The notes under the pieces: generated by a model
Told to the model about the DNA's origin: nothing
Database searches by the model: none
What the model saw: the letters and a program-made list of their open reading frames with translations, nothing else
Shown here: positions 32,001-41,000 of the stretch, piece by piece
Layout: every line of letters begins with the position of its first letter
Numbering within the stretch: position 1 is the stretch's first letter
DNA from: Podarcis pityusensis
Lineage: Eukaryota
Assembly: GCA_964106645.2 (NCBI GenBank)
Contig: OZ067049.1
Length of the DNA stretch: 64,000 nucleotides
Reading direction: 5' to 3' (one strand)
Made by a program: the position numbers and the translations under genes

Positions 32001-35000
32001 TGTAGAATGGTTTTCAGGTCACTTAATTTTGCTTGGTGAAACTATCCAAGATTCCCCAAGACTCCTTAGTCCAAATAGTAATTACTGTGTTCTAAAGTGG
32101 GATGCTCTTTTAAGCACAGATAATGTGGGAGATGTGGAAAACTCCTCTGAATGTAGTCTTTTAAAACAAAAACAAAATCTGGCCTCTTCCACTCTTCTAT
32201 ATGTAGTGTTACTGTTTTGATTGTTCAGTACTCGAACACCTCACAAATACTTTAACACCCAGGGAATAGAGGGGTCCTGATAACTTCATTTGTAAAGACA
32301 GGAATCTCAAATATAGTTACCTTCCTCGAGTTACTGAAAGGTTGCTGGTAGAAAACTGTTCAGTGTAGCCCAGCATTAAATCATAATAATGTTTCAATTT
32401 ATTTTTAAAGGGAGCTACTATTAAAAGGGATGAACAGACTGGAGCTGTTGTTGTGGCTCGAATAATGCGTGGAGGTGCTGCAGATAGAAGTGGTAAGAAT
32501 GTTTAAAAGTGTGATTGCTGGGATGTGATGGCCAGCCTAGTGCTTCAAATGAATTCTAAATTGCTTGGTAAAAGTAGGTAATTGCATCCAGAAACCTTTT
32601 TGTGGTTTCTGCCATGTATATTATTTTAGATTATTGTGATAGGATCTCTGATAGGATTTTGGTATTATGGATGCAATTTAGCAGTTTGAAAATTATCTCA
32701 TTAGTGAAATACATTTAGAAACTCAGCAAGAAGGAAGGTATCAAATCAGCCTCTCTGTATCGCAGTTTCACAGTTGAGCACTTCTGTGCACTAAGCATTT
32801 ATATTCTCTCCTGTAACAAAGATTCTCTGGGCAGAAAGATTAAAAACAATCACATTACAATAAAACTATAGTAATATTAAAATAAACAACTACAAACACA
32901 ATTCTCTTTTGCCTTCCCAAAGAGAGAGAGACAGAAAGACTTTGCTATAAAATTGCATTTGGGTAGAAGAGAAGTAGAAATCTGTTGTGCTTTGCGGAGT
33001 AGGAATTACCATGACTTGAAACAACGTTAGATATGCACAATTGTATTGAACTTTAAAATGGTTATTCAATAAATATGCTCCACAGGTCTCATTCATGTTG
33101 GCGATGAACTTAAGGAAGTTAATGGAATTCCTGTAGATGATAAAAAACCAGAAGAAATTATACAAATTCTGGTAGGTTACAAATGGAATAATTTAAGGCA
33201 GTTGATGATGAGCTGAATGGGTTGCGTTACAACCCCTGGCACATGATGGAGGCAGGAGCAAATAACTCTGGGAGGCAGGCACAGTCCTCGTTTTTTTCCT
33301 CCTGCCTGACTTGGCCTTTCTTCTTGCATTGGTTATTTTTATATCCTTTATTTCTTGGTTCATTAACTCTTTGATAGAACAAGAGAGGCTATTTCTTTAT
33401 TTTATGGTTTTGTTTTTTAAAATCCATAACAATTTATACACCACTTGATTGTAAACACTCTTAACAAACTTGCATAAATTATCAGAACATATCTGTTTTT
33501 TAGGACAGAAGAGAATATCGTAGCACAGCGTATTATAAAGAGGTACTAAGATGTTAATCACATCAAGTTAACTAGCACTACAAGTTACATTAGCTCTACC
33601 TTCCTTATTGTTTTTCTTTAACTTGTACTGAATGCTTTAATAATTTGTTTTTCACATCCTTTTAGTCCCAGTCGCAAGGAGCCATTACATTTAAAATTAT
33701 ACCCGGTATCAAAGAAGAAACTGCATCTAAAGAAGGAAAGGTAAGAGGTCCTTTACTCAGAAAAAGGGACTTACTGAGATTGCTGGCTGAAATATATTTT
33801 GTACCCATATGTAAATGTGTTTTACAATTGTATTTTTACACATGTTGTTTGTATGCCAATAAGCAATAAAAACGGAGACTGGGGGTTGTAATAAGACATT
33901 TAATTACAAATAAGGCCACCTTCTTCCAGATCTTCATGAAAGCTCTGTTTGACTATGATCCCAGTGAGGATAAAGCAATTCCCTGTAAAGAAGCTGGACT
34001 TCCTTTCAGAAAAGGTGATATTCTTCAGATCATGAGCCAGGATGATGCAACTTGGTGGCAAGCCAAGCTTGAAGGTAATGCCAATCCCAGGGCAGGCTTA
34101 ATTCCTTCAAAGCATTTCCAAGAAAGGTGAGCAGTTTCTGATTTCTCTGATACTTAAAATGTGATCAGTATATCTTTGATATAATTGTTATGCCTGCACT
34201 TATGGATTATAAGGTCAATAAACTTTCAAGTTTTGTCCTATGATAAAATGTCTGAACTTTGTAAGTTGTTGCCCAAGTAGTTTGGTTTTCTTTAGTTGTC
34301 TATTCACATTAATAATGACAAAACCGTATAGAATATTTGTGATCCACCTTGGAAAGGAAAAACATATGGAAAATAGTACTTTGGTATCTGTATCTTTATT
34401 GATGTACTATGCATGAATAACAACTGCAGCTGTGTTTGGAGAACATAAAAAACCCTTCTAGGATTTAATTTCATAGACTTGTGAGTAGACTGTATTGTTT
34501 AGGAATATGTCTTCTAAAAATCAGGATACTTTGGAAAAGACTGATATGGAGTGTTAATCTCAAAATAGCTATGAAAATTATAAAGAGTTTTGCTTCTCTT
34601 CCCTTCCCCCTTCCCCCAAATCATTTTATAGGAGGCTTGCACTAAGAAGATCAGATGTACAGGTTCAGCCCTTGAAAGTTTCCAATAGAAAATCATGTAA
34701 GTCTGTTTAAAAATCATACTCCTTTGTTCACACAAATATGGCTTGTATCAGCTCTTTTTAAGATATGGCGCTGGTATCTTCAGATATATCAGCAGGCCAA
34801 AACCTGTGATGCTGTAGGAATGGGATTTTCGTTAAAGAAAATGGCTTACCCCCGCTTCCGTCATCAATACTTAGGCAAAACCTATTCCCTACAGTGAATA
34901 AAATAATAAATATGCCAATCTCTAATTATTGGAAGGGCATTCTTAATGACTCACTGGGTATTTAAATACTACACAAAGGGGACACATGTGAAGTCAGTGC

Positions 35001-38000: not shown

Positions 38001-41000
38001 CTCTTAAGAATGCATTCAAGTAGGTGTCCTGTCCTTTGTGATTGTGACTTCCTTGTATTGTAAAGGGACAAGAATCTGAACAACTACATGCATGTACCCT
38101 TTAAAACTGATATGCATGTGTGTTGTGCTCCGATATCTGTACCATAGTATGAAATTTCATCAGAAGCTACCTGTGTAAGGTAATGATGCTTGATCAAGGA
38201 GCAATAAAAGTGGTACTAGCAGAAGTTGTGTCTTTGGTGGGAGGGGAGACTTTGATGGGCAAGCAGGCAGAGAAATGAGCCCAAATAAAGTTTGTTCTAG
38301 TTCATTGTAAGTTGGCTCTGGGATGTGTCTAATAAACTAGGGCAGGGGTGGGGAGCCTGTCGCCCCCATATGTTACTGAACTACAGCTCCCATCCTTCAT
38401 GGCCATTAGCCATACTGGCTAGGGCTGATGGGAATCAGAGTCCAGCAACATCTGGAGAACCCTACTTCTGGGCTCAGACAGAGCTTTCCAAACTGTGTGC
38501 CACAACACAACACCTACAGCTGCAATGTGTAGGTGTGTCACACAAACACTCCCTGTGCTCTTATAAGGAGTTAGTTTAACCTCTGGTTTGCTAGTAAAGC
38601 TGAATTACTGTGTCACAAAATGATGCATGTCTAAAAAGTGTGTCACCAGTATGAAAAGTTTGGAAAGCTCTGGGCTAGAGGAAGTCTCTGGATGAAAGCA
38701 ACAACCTGTAGACAACTTAACTTCAACTTAAGAGTGTAACCATTTCAAAATTACAATTGAAAACCCAGTGACTCTTACTTATGATGCTAAGCAGAACATG
38801 ACTAGTTAATGTATTGTTTTTTCATCCCAGAGCTGGTTCAAACCTTTCTGTATCTTAAACAGTGTTAGGGGAACATAGCCTTTGCATACACACCAAAAAA
38901 ACTTTACACATTTTGAAAGTGAGGTTCTGTCATTTCCCACTCCCATAAAAGAAATTGGGGTACAGGCTTTTGCAGCAAAACGTTGAACGTGCAGTGCATC
39001 ATACTTCTCCAAAATATGCTCTTAACCTGTTCTTTATATTACACAGCTCTGTTTTTCCCATTTTATTATGTGCTGAATATAATGTAAATCATGTCTGCTT
39101 GTCTTTTGGCTGTTCTAAGCTGAGGAAACAGTTGAGTGTGGTAGGTGTTTTACCCCCCCCCCCTTTATTCTTCCATTATGTCTTCAGTCCATGTAATCAC
39201 TTTGCATCCTATTTTTCCCCCTTTTGCGCTTCTCAGAGGAAATTGAAGGTACATGTACAAGCTTCCCTGCTGGGCTGCAAGTGATGGCTTAAAAACTAAG
39301 TATTCTAGGTCATCACTGACTTAGAGGCAATTAGAAAATAATCCATATAGATAGCAGTATATGTAGTCATAACAGCCAGTTGCTTAGTTGTTGCTGGAAT
39401 TGTTGTTTCAATCCTGAGAATCGTGGTAGTAGAAGACTGTGAACATGTTGCTTTCTGCACGTAGTTCCTACAGCACAGTACTGGCATGTGTGCATGAAGA
39501 TTCCTGTGGGGTAAGGCACAGGGATCCACATGTGTTATCCCATTGTCAGATGTGGTTTCTTCCTTTGTATTTTTCCTTCTCCTCACATAGCAGGAATTTT
39601 GGGGGCCCAACGCAACAGATCTGCCTGTTTCTGCACATGGGTCAAGTATGCAGAACAGGAGTGAATGTGTGCTAAAACCTCTGAATGTTAGCAAAGTAAC
39701 ATAACTGAACAAAGCAGATATGTTAACACAAGGCATTTCCATGGAGCTAAAGATGATGTCAGTCCTATTGCATGGCTCTAATAGATTATCTTTCTTAAAT
39801 TCAAACTTTGACACTGAATAAAGTGGATCTTTTCCAGTCATTAGGGGTGCAATTTTGGAACACAGCTTGACAGATGCTTTACTGCTGTGGTGTCAATCTT
39901 TGGGGGACTTTTCACTTGCAGCATACATTTAAACAGTTGTACCTCATTGATTTCTTTAGATAGGTTATCTATCTATCTATCTATCCATCTGTCTGTATAT
40001 ACCCAAAAGCTGTAAAGTGTTTTGTTAGACATTTGGTATATTAAAATAGGCACCAATACTATTTTATACCTAAGAAGTTATATTCATTAAAAATACCCTT
40101 TCTGTCTGATCCATTGAGCCAAATACAAAAACTCCTGATATTCTTTGTAGATTTCTTTACCTTTGTGTTTCAGCTGTTGTATTTTTTATCCTACATTAAA
40201 ATATAAAGTAGAACACCTTTTAAAATCACTTTTTTATTTTCTGTCATGAATAAGGCAATAAAACAGTGAAAAGTTAAATATGCATGTTGCTGTACTCCAA
40301 AATCTCTTGCTCAACTTCAGAACAACACAGTGATTTATTTTTAAGCAGTGGCATATTGAAGGCTTTTTATGCTGTGCTTTCTGCAGTTGTCATTTTTAAG
40401 TAACTCTTCTTTTGCATTCATGGCTGGGCATCTAACTATTCTGCTTTATTTCTTGGCTTTTGTTCTGTACGCTTTTACACTTCATCCAGAGGAAGCTGAA
40501 TGTGCTGGTCACAACAGTGGAGCCCACATAGGTGAGCAGTTGCTTACAAAAGACTCTCTTTCTTTCTCAGCTTTTTCCTGGATGGCTACAGAGTTTGCAG
40601 GTAATGGGCATCACTGCATGCTATGAATCTGCTAGATTAAAAAATGGCTCACTGGATTTGACACAAAGGATCTGCATCCTAACCGCAACATATGTTACTA
40701 ACATTGAAATATAGAATGCATTGAAATGCTACCTTGAATATAAGGAAATAATTTACTTGGGTAGAATTTGCAAGGAAATTTAAATACTTGTCCTAGACAA
40801 AATGTTAGGCTGGCTATATTCCATCTGACTACATTATTTTTCTATCACAGTGTTCTTCAATCTTGGGTCCCAGATGATATTGAACTACAACTCCCATCAA
40901 GCCTTATTAAATAAGCTGGTAGGAATGGTGAAAGTTGTAATCTCATGACTTAGTGTAGGGATAGCCATTGTAGTACCTGACACTTGTTGTGGGCTACAGT

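Follow-up and report, generated by a model that had tools for sequence, protein, structure and literature searches.

Split-codon junctions and predicted stops in the HOOK microexon array of MPP7 in the lizard Podarcis pityusensis

MAGUK proteins such as DLG1/SAP97 (inserts I2 and I3), p55/MPP1 and CASK carry variable peptides in the HOOK region, between the SH3 and guanylate kinase (GK) domains and beside a basic 4.1/FERM-binding motif. In this study, we analyzed the HOOK region of MPP7 in a 64,000-nucleotide (nt) stretch of one strand from the lizard Podarcis pityusensis (the window; GenBank assembly GCA_964106645.2, contig OZ067049.1), where four cassette microexons lie in a single intron and some of their junctions would complete a stop codon. 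These stops are probably a by-product of split glutamate codons. Comparable systems have been described elsewhere. In PSD-95 (DLG4), skipping of exon 18 makes the mRNA a target of nonsense-mediated mRNA decay (NMD), and the switch is controlled by PTBP (PMC4265770; review PMC7764535). Splicing at NAGNAG tandem acceptors is regulated and conserved (PMC3250501), and the stop of CFTR E831X, which lies at such an acceptor, is bypassed by choice of the distal NAG (PMC2951375). In mouse Mpp7 itself, a 21-nt NEURAL-UP microexon that is not annotated had an inclusion of 0.13 versus 0.40 in islets, varying with the Srrm4 level (PMC8395343).

Microexons and junction codons in the HOOK intron

The gene in the window is the complete MPP7 of a lacertid lizard. 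A tblastn search with the MPP7 protein of Podarcis muralis located the whole coding region, from 8002 to a stop after 58736; the coding exons were near-identical to the query, with one or two true residue differences left. Motif scans and Pfam searches of the exon translations revealed PDZ, SH3_1 and Guanylate_kin matches in that order on the + strand. The L27 exons aligned to Podarcis MPP7, whose precomputed domains include PF02828, and the gene has the L27-PDZ-SH3-HOOK-GK architecture of MPP7. The exons, compared one at a time with annotated ortholog proteins, supported orthology to MPP7 rather than to MPP3 or another p55 paralog, bird MPP3 being only 59% identical over a downstream exon of 56 amino acids (aa). 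The microexon array is located inside a 12.7-kb intron that separates the SH3-proximal HOOK exon from the exon with the basic HOOK motif.

The constitutive HOOK exon (34632-34696, + strand; 65 nt, encoding a 21-residue peptide) ends in AAA TCA T before the donor gtaagt, in phase 1, as a first-pass annotation of this DNA had read it. The next constitutive exon (47399-47569, + strand; 171 nt) begins ctacag/CT GGT TTC AGG AGG and carries the basic HOOK motif (slashes mark exon boundaries). Between them, all on the + strand, the array consists of cassettes that are phase 1 at both ends; every junction splits a codon 1+2, and the microexons contain no internal stops. The 21-nt microexon (39120-39140), ttctaag/CTGAGGAAACAGTTGAGTGTG/gtaggt, reads CT GAG GAA ACA GTT GAG TGT G; after T it encodes SEETVEC, and its final G makes the next junction GAG. 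The 12-nt microexon (39237-39248), ctcag/AGGAAATTGAAG/gtacat, gives E-EIE after G and TAG after T. The 42-nt microexon (40490-40531), tccag/AGGAAGCT...ACATAG/gtgagc, reads AG GAA GCT...ATA G and gives a 14-residue peptide after G and, again, TAG after T. A 30-nt lacertid cassette (40571-40600) runs from CT to G, encodes a 10-residue peptide and produces no stop after either T or G.

The junctions were examined with a script that read junction triplets only. Joining the constitutive exon to the 12- or the 42-nt exon gave TAG, and joining it to the 21-nt exon or to the downstream exon gave TCT (Ser). The 21-to-12, 21-to-42 and 12-to-42 junctions all read GAG (Glu), and each microexon gave GCT (Ala) with the downstream exon. 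At each junction the first base of the split codon is T when it comes from the constitutive exon and G when it comes from a microexon. The AG start of the 12- and 42-nt exons reflects a first codon for Glu, split as G/AG; after T the same letters complete UAG. Both direct junctions, 34696/39237 and 34696/40490, were therefore stops, as the first-pass annotation had claimed from the AG starts. Its six exons downstream of the stop were also located (47399-47569, ~53169, 54682, 56067, 56739 and 58554-58739, + strand).

By the 50-55-nt rule, an mRNA is a predicted NMD substrate if more than that distance separates its stop from the final exon-exon junction downstream. The stops formed here exceed this distance, with six exons following, to 58554, so that mRNAs carrying them are predicted NMD substrates. 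The first-pass annotation had counted three of eight combinations as poisoned, a count that was incomplete since it missed the cassette at 40571-40600; with all four cassettes, 6 of the 16 combinations open with a stop junction. As far as the sequence can be read, the 12- and 42-nt exons would be productive in the window lizard only after an exon that ends in G, namely the 21-nt exon or, for the 42-nt exon, the 12-nt exon.

The combined peptide insert is acidic, contains Cys and immediately precedes the basic HOOK motif, and approximately one third of its residues are Glu. The T/AG arrangement is not statistically striking, given this share of Glu and the fact that any phase-1 Glu codon is a stop after T.

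Conservation and annotation of the microexons

The intron between 34696 and 47399 was aligned whole to the gecko, snake and bird loci. Only two blocks of its 12.7 kb aligned to homologous parts, and both contain microexons: an island at 39063-39339 around the 21- and 12-nt exons and an island at 40079-40727 around the 42- and 30-nt exons (no strand assigned to either). In the second, identity to snake and gecko was 75-82% over ~650 nt; the bird-type locus matched over 262 nt, at 82%. A splice-signal scan of the intron returned 11 in-frame microexon candidates above modest thresholds, which is chance level, and splice signals alone were therefore insufficient. It is conservation and annotated isoforms, rather than splice signals, that establish the exons.

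The letters of the 21-nt exon are the same in Zootoca and in the gecko Sphaerodactylus, one base off in Crotalus and four bases off in the bird-type locus, and its flanks, ttctaag/ and /gtaggtg, are kept in Crotalus and the bird-type locus. SEETVEC is present in isoform X1 of both P. muralis and P. raffonei. The first-pass annotation had described a 21-nt exon with a CT start, a final G and the weakest splice sites. This logic stood, as 39120-39140 shares these ends and has the weakest acceptor of the three (AAG, with A at -3; AAG is conserved), but the apparent site, 36701-36721, did not. The latter has an acceptor score of -1.9, a poor polypyrimidine tract and a GC donor. It aligned only to the close relative Zootoca, at neutral intron level, had no match in the gecko, snake or bird loci, and lies outside both conserved islands; its peptide, AMHCDA, occurred in none of 204 MPP7 proteins. 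Another 21-nt candidate with a GC donor, 37834-37854, was ruled out by its splice scores.

For the 12-nt exon, 12 of 12 bases are identical in the bird-type locus and the gecko, and 11 of 12 in Zootoca and Crotalus, always with the AG start. It is annotated in isoforms X1-X4 of Sphaerodactylus (EEIE) and in many tetrapods. The EEIE-GT-EAECAG of Sphaerodactylus X1 is consistent with a second donor 6 nt past the exon (GAAGgtacag/gt); the equivalent 6-nt extension in the window (39249-39254) would end in T, and T plus AG would be a stop again. Within the 96 nt of intron that separate the 21-nt from the 12-nt exon, a run of ~13 C is present at 39153-39165, and its length differs between the window and Zootoca.

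The 42-nt exon is present in Podarcis X1, with orthologous DNA in the bird-type locus and three squamates. The Podarcis X1 protein, NRKS/SEETVEC/14-residue peptide/A/GFRR, corresponds exactly to the exons at 39120 and 40490. The 30-nt exon is annotated in isoform X3 of P. raffonei, in X1 of P. muralis (newer annotation), Zootoca and Lacerta agilis, and in other isoforms of these species; its homologous stretch in gecko and snake has frame-breaking indels. It begins 39 nt past the donor of the 42-nt exon (gap 40532-40570). A length of 39 nt is probably less than a vertebrate intron requires, so that these two exons are likely to be mutually exclusive for steric reasons.

Annotated isoforms with the three-part insert were found in sharks, gar, sturgeon, lungfish, frogs, salamanders, turtles, crocodilians, birds and mammals. 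Bird MPP3, a paralog, shows a homologous layout, KKPV/YDQSSDK/EDCDCEGYFNGQYI/A/GLRR, with the skipped form KKPL/S/GLRR, which indicates that the array is older than the MPP3/MPP7 split. These comparisons point to an ancient cassette array common to MPP7 and its paralog MPP3, to which the 30-nt exon would be a lacertid-specific addition.

Orthologous junctions and the origin of the stops

The annotated isoforms were obtained by searching 1.84 billion representatives with the downstream 56-aa exon, followed by word searches with full-length MPP7 proteins. Isoform counts were taken from individual proteins and not from cluster sizes, as 90% clusters mix isoforms; genomic open reading frame fragments that match the 56-aa exon bear on the exon start only, not on isoforms. 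A word search with this exon returned only such fragments, in which it starts with CT in many species.

The first-pass annotation had made the conservation of T/AG in orthologs a check on its proposal, and this held in part. The terminal ...AAATCAT/gtaagt of the constitutive HOOK exon is kept in the DNA of three squamates, Zootoca, Sphaerodactylus and Crotalus, and elsewhere the T is implied by Ser or Tyr junction codons. The 12-nt exon starts with AG in all four orthologous DNAs and with Glu in all proteins but one, that of lungfish, which has Asp. In its 42-nt form, the third exon has Glu as its first codon throughout, hence AA or AG as its first two bases, either of which makes a stop after T. 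What did not hold is the dependency itself, which is bypassed outside squamates by a 39-nt form of the third exon. In the bird-type locus this exon begins cag/AAG/AT GCT, a NAGNAG tandem acceptor with sites 3 nt apart; the 39-nt form starts with AT, which completes TAT (Tyr) when T precedes it and GAT (Asp) when G does. The 600- and 601-aa isoforms differ by the single residue of this acceptor, and similar one-residue protein pairs imply that many other vertebrates share it.

In the census of 204 MPP7 proteins, 29 had no insert, 4 had the 21-nt exon alone, 7 the 21- and 12-nt exons, and 37 the 21- and 42-nt exons. All three parts were present in 39 proteins with the 42-nt form and in 14 with the 39-nt form, and 4 combined the 21-nt exon with the 39-nt form. 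The largest class was the third exon alone in its 39-nt Tyr form (NRKS/Y/AECAG.../A/GFRR), with 54 proteins, 18 of them distinct, from birds, turtles, crocodilians, mammals and a salamander; none was from a squamate.

Several annotated isoforms of other vertebrates depart from this scheme. The predicted mouse Mpp7 isoforms X6 and X5 (363 and 364 aa) use an alternative first exon inside the HOOK intron, followed by all three microexons and the GK domain; their product would be HOOK-GK only, and the junction Asn means that this first exon ends in A. MPP7 X1 of Marmota, Fukomys and Pseudorca has an extra 18-nt exon (DAVCAT or DAVCAK) after the third microexon, and in a frog transcript a different 21-nt exon (GADGREK) replaces the third exon.

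In squamates, the second codon of the third exon is GAA and not GAT. The gecko keeps the tandem site, cag/AAG/AA, and after T either form makes TAA. Lacertids and Crotalus have cag/AGG, so that the tandem site is gone and the window contains no NAGNAG acceptor at this exon; for Anolis and Pogona, the proteins imply the same Glu-Glu start. The coding dependency thus appears to be absolute in squamates but not ancestral, and the Tyr bypass of non-squamates means that the gate is not a conserved design principle. It is conceivable, if rather doubtful, that squamates turned an ancestral productive isoform, the third exon alone with Tyr, into an unproductive one through GAT to GAA, together with AAG to AGG in lacertids and the snake. 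If so, squamates could use the downstream exon productively only under the licence of the 21-nt microexon, which is probably neural. Transcripts that encode the 589-aa isoform in other tetrapods would, in the same tissues of lizards, go to NMD, and a split codon would have rewired the isoform logic of one lineage.

We consider it probable that the stops arise, in the main, passively, as by-products of split Glu codons, and so limit the productive combinations; they would not be a purpose-built regulated gate. The constitutive exon supplies T and the microexons G, the Glu-starting 12- and 42-nt exons read UAG after T, and an mRNA with either of them as its first included cassette is unproductive and a predicted NMD substrate. 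In other tetrapods, the short form from the tandem acceptor CAG/AAG/AT reads UAU (Tyr) after T and yields the common third-exon-alone isoform. The squamate change of GAT to GAA, with AAG to AGG in lacertids and the snake, would have closed this bypass.

Several points weigh against this explanation. Exon use was judged from DNA and annotated proteins alone. The 12-nt exon is absent from lacertid annotations, with its sequence and splice sites intact in the window, and we infer its use in this animal from conservation and the gecko annotation. An AAG/CT acceptor at 40496 defines a 36-nt form of the third exon that reads TCT (Ser) after T, which would be a possible bypass of the stop. Neither the 12-nt exon nor the 42-nt form occurred without the 21-nt exon among the 204 proteins, but the stop itself enforces absence from protein annotation, and this zero therefore says nothing on mRNA production or decay. 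Finally, the invariant Glu at the two exon starts, in sharks and mammals alike, is compatible with selection for the stop itself and not for the protein only.

One alternative, which we regard as unlikely, is a regulated gate, in which the 12- and 42-nt exons would be broadly included and the weak, probably neural 21-nt exon would set the balance between the long isoform and UAG. The UAG mRNA would then go to NMD or yield an L27-PDZ-SH3 protein without GK, and MPP7 dosage would be tuned by tissue. The junction-stop arrangement is real, the 21-nt exon has the weakest acceptor with a conserved AAG, and the two intronic islands show the strong conservation that typically accompanies regulated exons. 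There is also a MAGUK precedent in PSD-95 exon 18, the inclusion of which is needed to escape NMD (PMC4265770). Moreover, the 54 proteins in which the third exon is used without the 21-nt exon outside squamates indicate that splicing of these two exons is not intrinsically coupled, which makes pre-mRNAs with the 42-nt but not the 21-nt exon plausible in lizards. However, split Glu codons in an acidic insert fully explain the arrangement; given the ancestral bypass through NAGNAG and Tyr, the layout cannot have been conserved for the purpose of a gate; and the canonical isoform with all cassettes skipped is productive, so that MPP7 expression is independent of the 21-nt exon.

About equally improbable is that the 21- and 42-nt exons of squamates, with or without the 12-nt exon, are included as one co-regulated unit, so that poisoned forms are practically never made and the stops have no consequence. 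The combination of 21- and 42-nt exons is indeed X1 in Podarcis, Anolis, Pogona and Paroedura, X3 in Crotalus, and occurs within the Sphaerodactylus series. Isoforms with the 21-nt exon alone in Anolis, however, and the 21- plus 12-nt and third-exon-alone isoforms of other tetrapods, indicate that the exons are separable, and isoforms with a premature stop are invisible to protein annotation.

It seems very unlikely that lizards make a third-exon-alone protein through the AAG/CT acceptor at 40496, with UCU (Ser) after T. AAG does precede 40496 and the junction codon is TCT, but the squamate proteins collected contained no NRKS-S-ECAGH, and a strong CAG acceptor at the exon start precedes the site by 6 nt. 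That the microexons are chance AG...GT matches and no feature at all has next to no probability: 11 in-frame candidates do pass modest thresholds and the 36701 pick is itself such a match, the only one for which this explanation holds, but it is refuted for 39120, 39237, 40490 and 40571 by DNA conservation across species, by the exact fit to RefSeq isoforms of close relatives, and by the presence of the insert in vertebrates as far apart as sharks and mammals and in paralogous MPP3.

The junction codons show that a length divisible by three does not by itself make a cassette exon safe to combine with others: where codons are split 1+2, the last base of the preceding exon decides between Glu and stop. 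This bears on isoform annotation, on the prediction of exon skipping and on the reading of microexon arrays. There is an evolutionary contrast as well, in that most tetrapods dodge the stop by a tandem acceptor and squamates cannot. As the insert directly adjoins the basic HOOK motif, the allowed combinations may shape partner binding.

Other features of the locus and comparison with known systems

The complete MPP7 coding region (8002-58739) spans ~51 kb of the window. The PDZ-to-HOOK exons are crowded into 32.4-34.7 kb, and the HOOK intron alone takes up 12.7 kb. In the L27 region (~14923 / 23930), the lacertid isoform pairs of 597/595 and 586/584 aa reflect a two-residue VK deletion in ...SLHSLVKIHEKL..., which suggests a 6-nt tandem splice site at the exon boundary.

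Literature searches for MPP7 with HOOK or splicing and for MPP3 with NMD returned nothing relevant, and the papers found discussed neither a junction-stop dependency nor a squamate loss of the Tyr bypass. With the inserts of other MAGUK proteins, the likeness is one of position only; the MPP7 insert is unrelated in sequence to DLG1 I3. The 21- and 12-nt exons look like neural microexons of the SRRM4/eMIC type, judging from their lengths, their conserved intronic flanks and a UGC near the acceptor: both are within 27 nt, and TGC lies at -12 to -10 from the 3' splice site of the 12-nt exon and at -24 to -22 from that of the 21-nt exon. We infer, from gene and length only, that the NEURAL-UP 21-nt exon of mouse Mpp7 is the ortholog of 39120-39140.

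As in CFTR E831X, a distal NAG, here that of the bird-type MPP7 locus (CAG/AAG/AT), removes the triplet that completes the stop, and mammalian MPP7 behaves likewise. Unlike in CFTR E831X, the MPP7 stop depends on the context of the upstream exon (T versus G) and involves no mutation, and the window lizard is without the tandem site. As with PSD-95 exon 18, inclusion of one small exon is needed for a productive MAGUK mRNA, in MPP7 at the level of sequence. In contrast to PSD-95, all MPP7 cassettes are multiples of three, the stop arises only from a split codon and the all-skipped form is productive.

The closest match is with the annotated HOOK isoforms of MPP7 itself. In P. muralis X1 (XP_028607220.1 / A0A670J7G2), SEETVEC and the 14-residue peptide are identical to the window exons. 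The series X1-X7 of Sphaerodactylus townsendi includes EEIE, which matches the 12-nt exon, and birds, turtles and mammals have the 600/601-aa and 589-aa isoforms. The microexons of the window are thus already in RefSeq and UniProt for close relatives, and the stop dependency is another case of a known kind.

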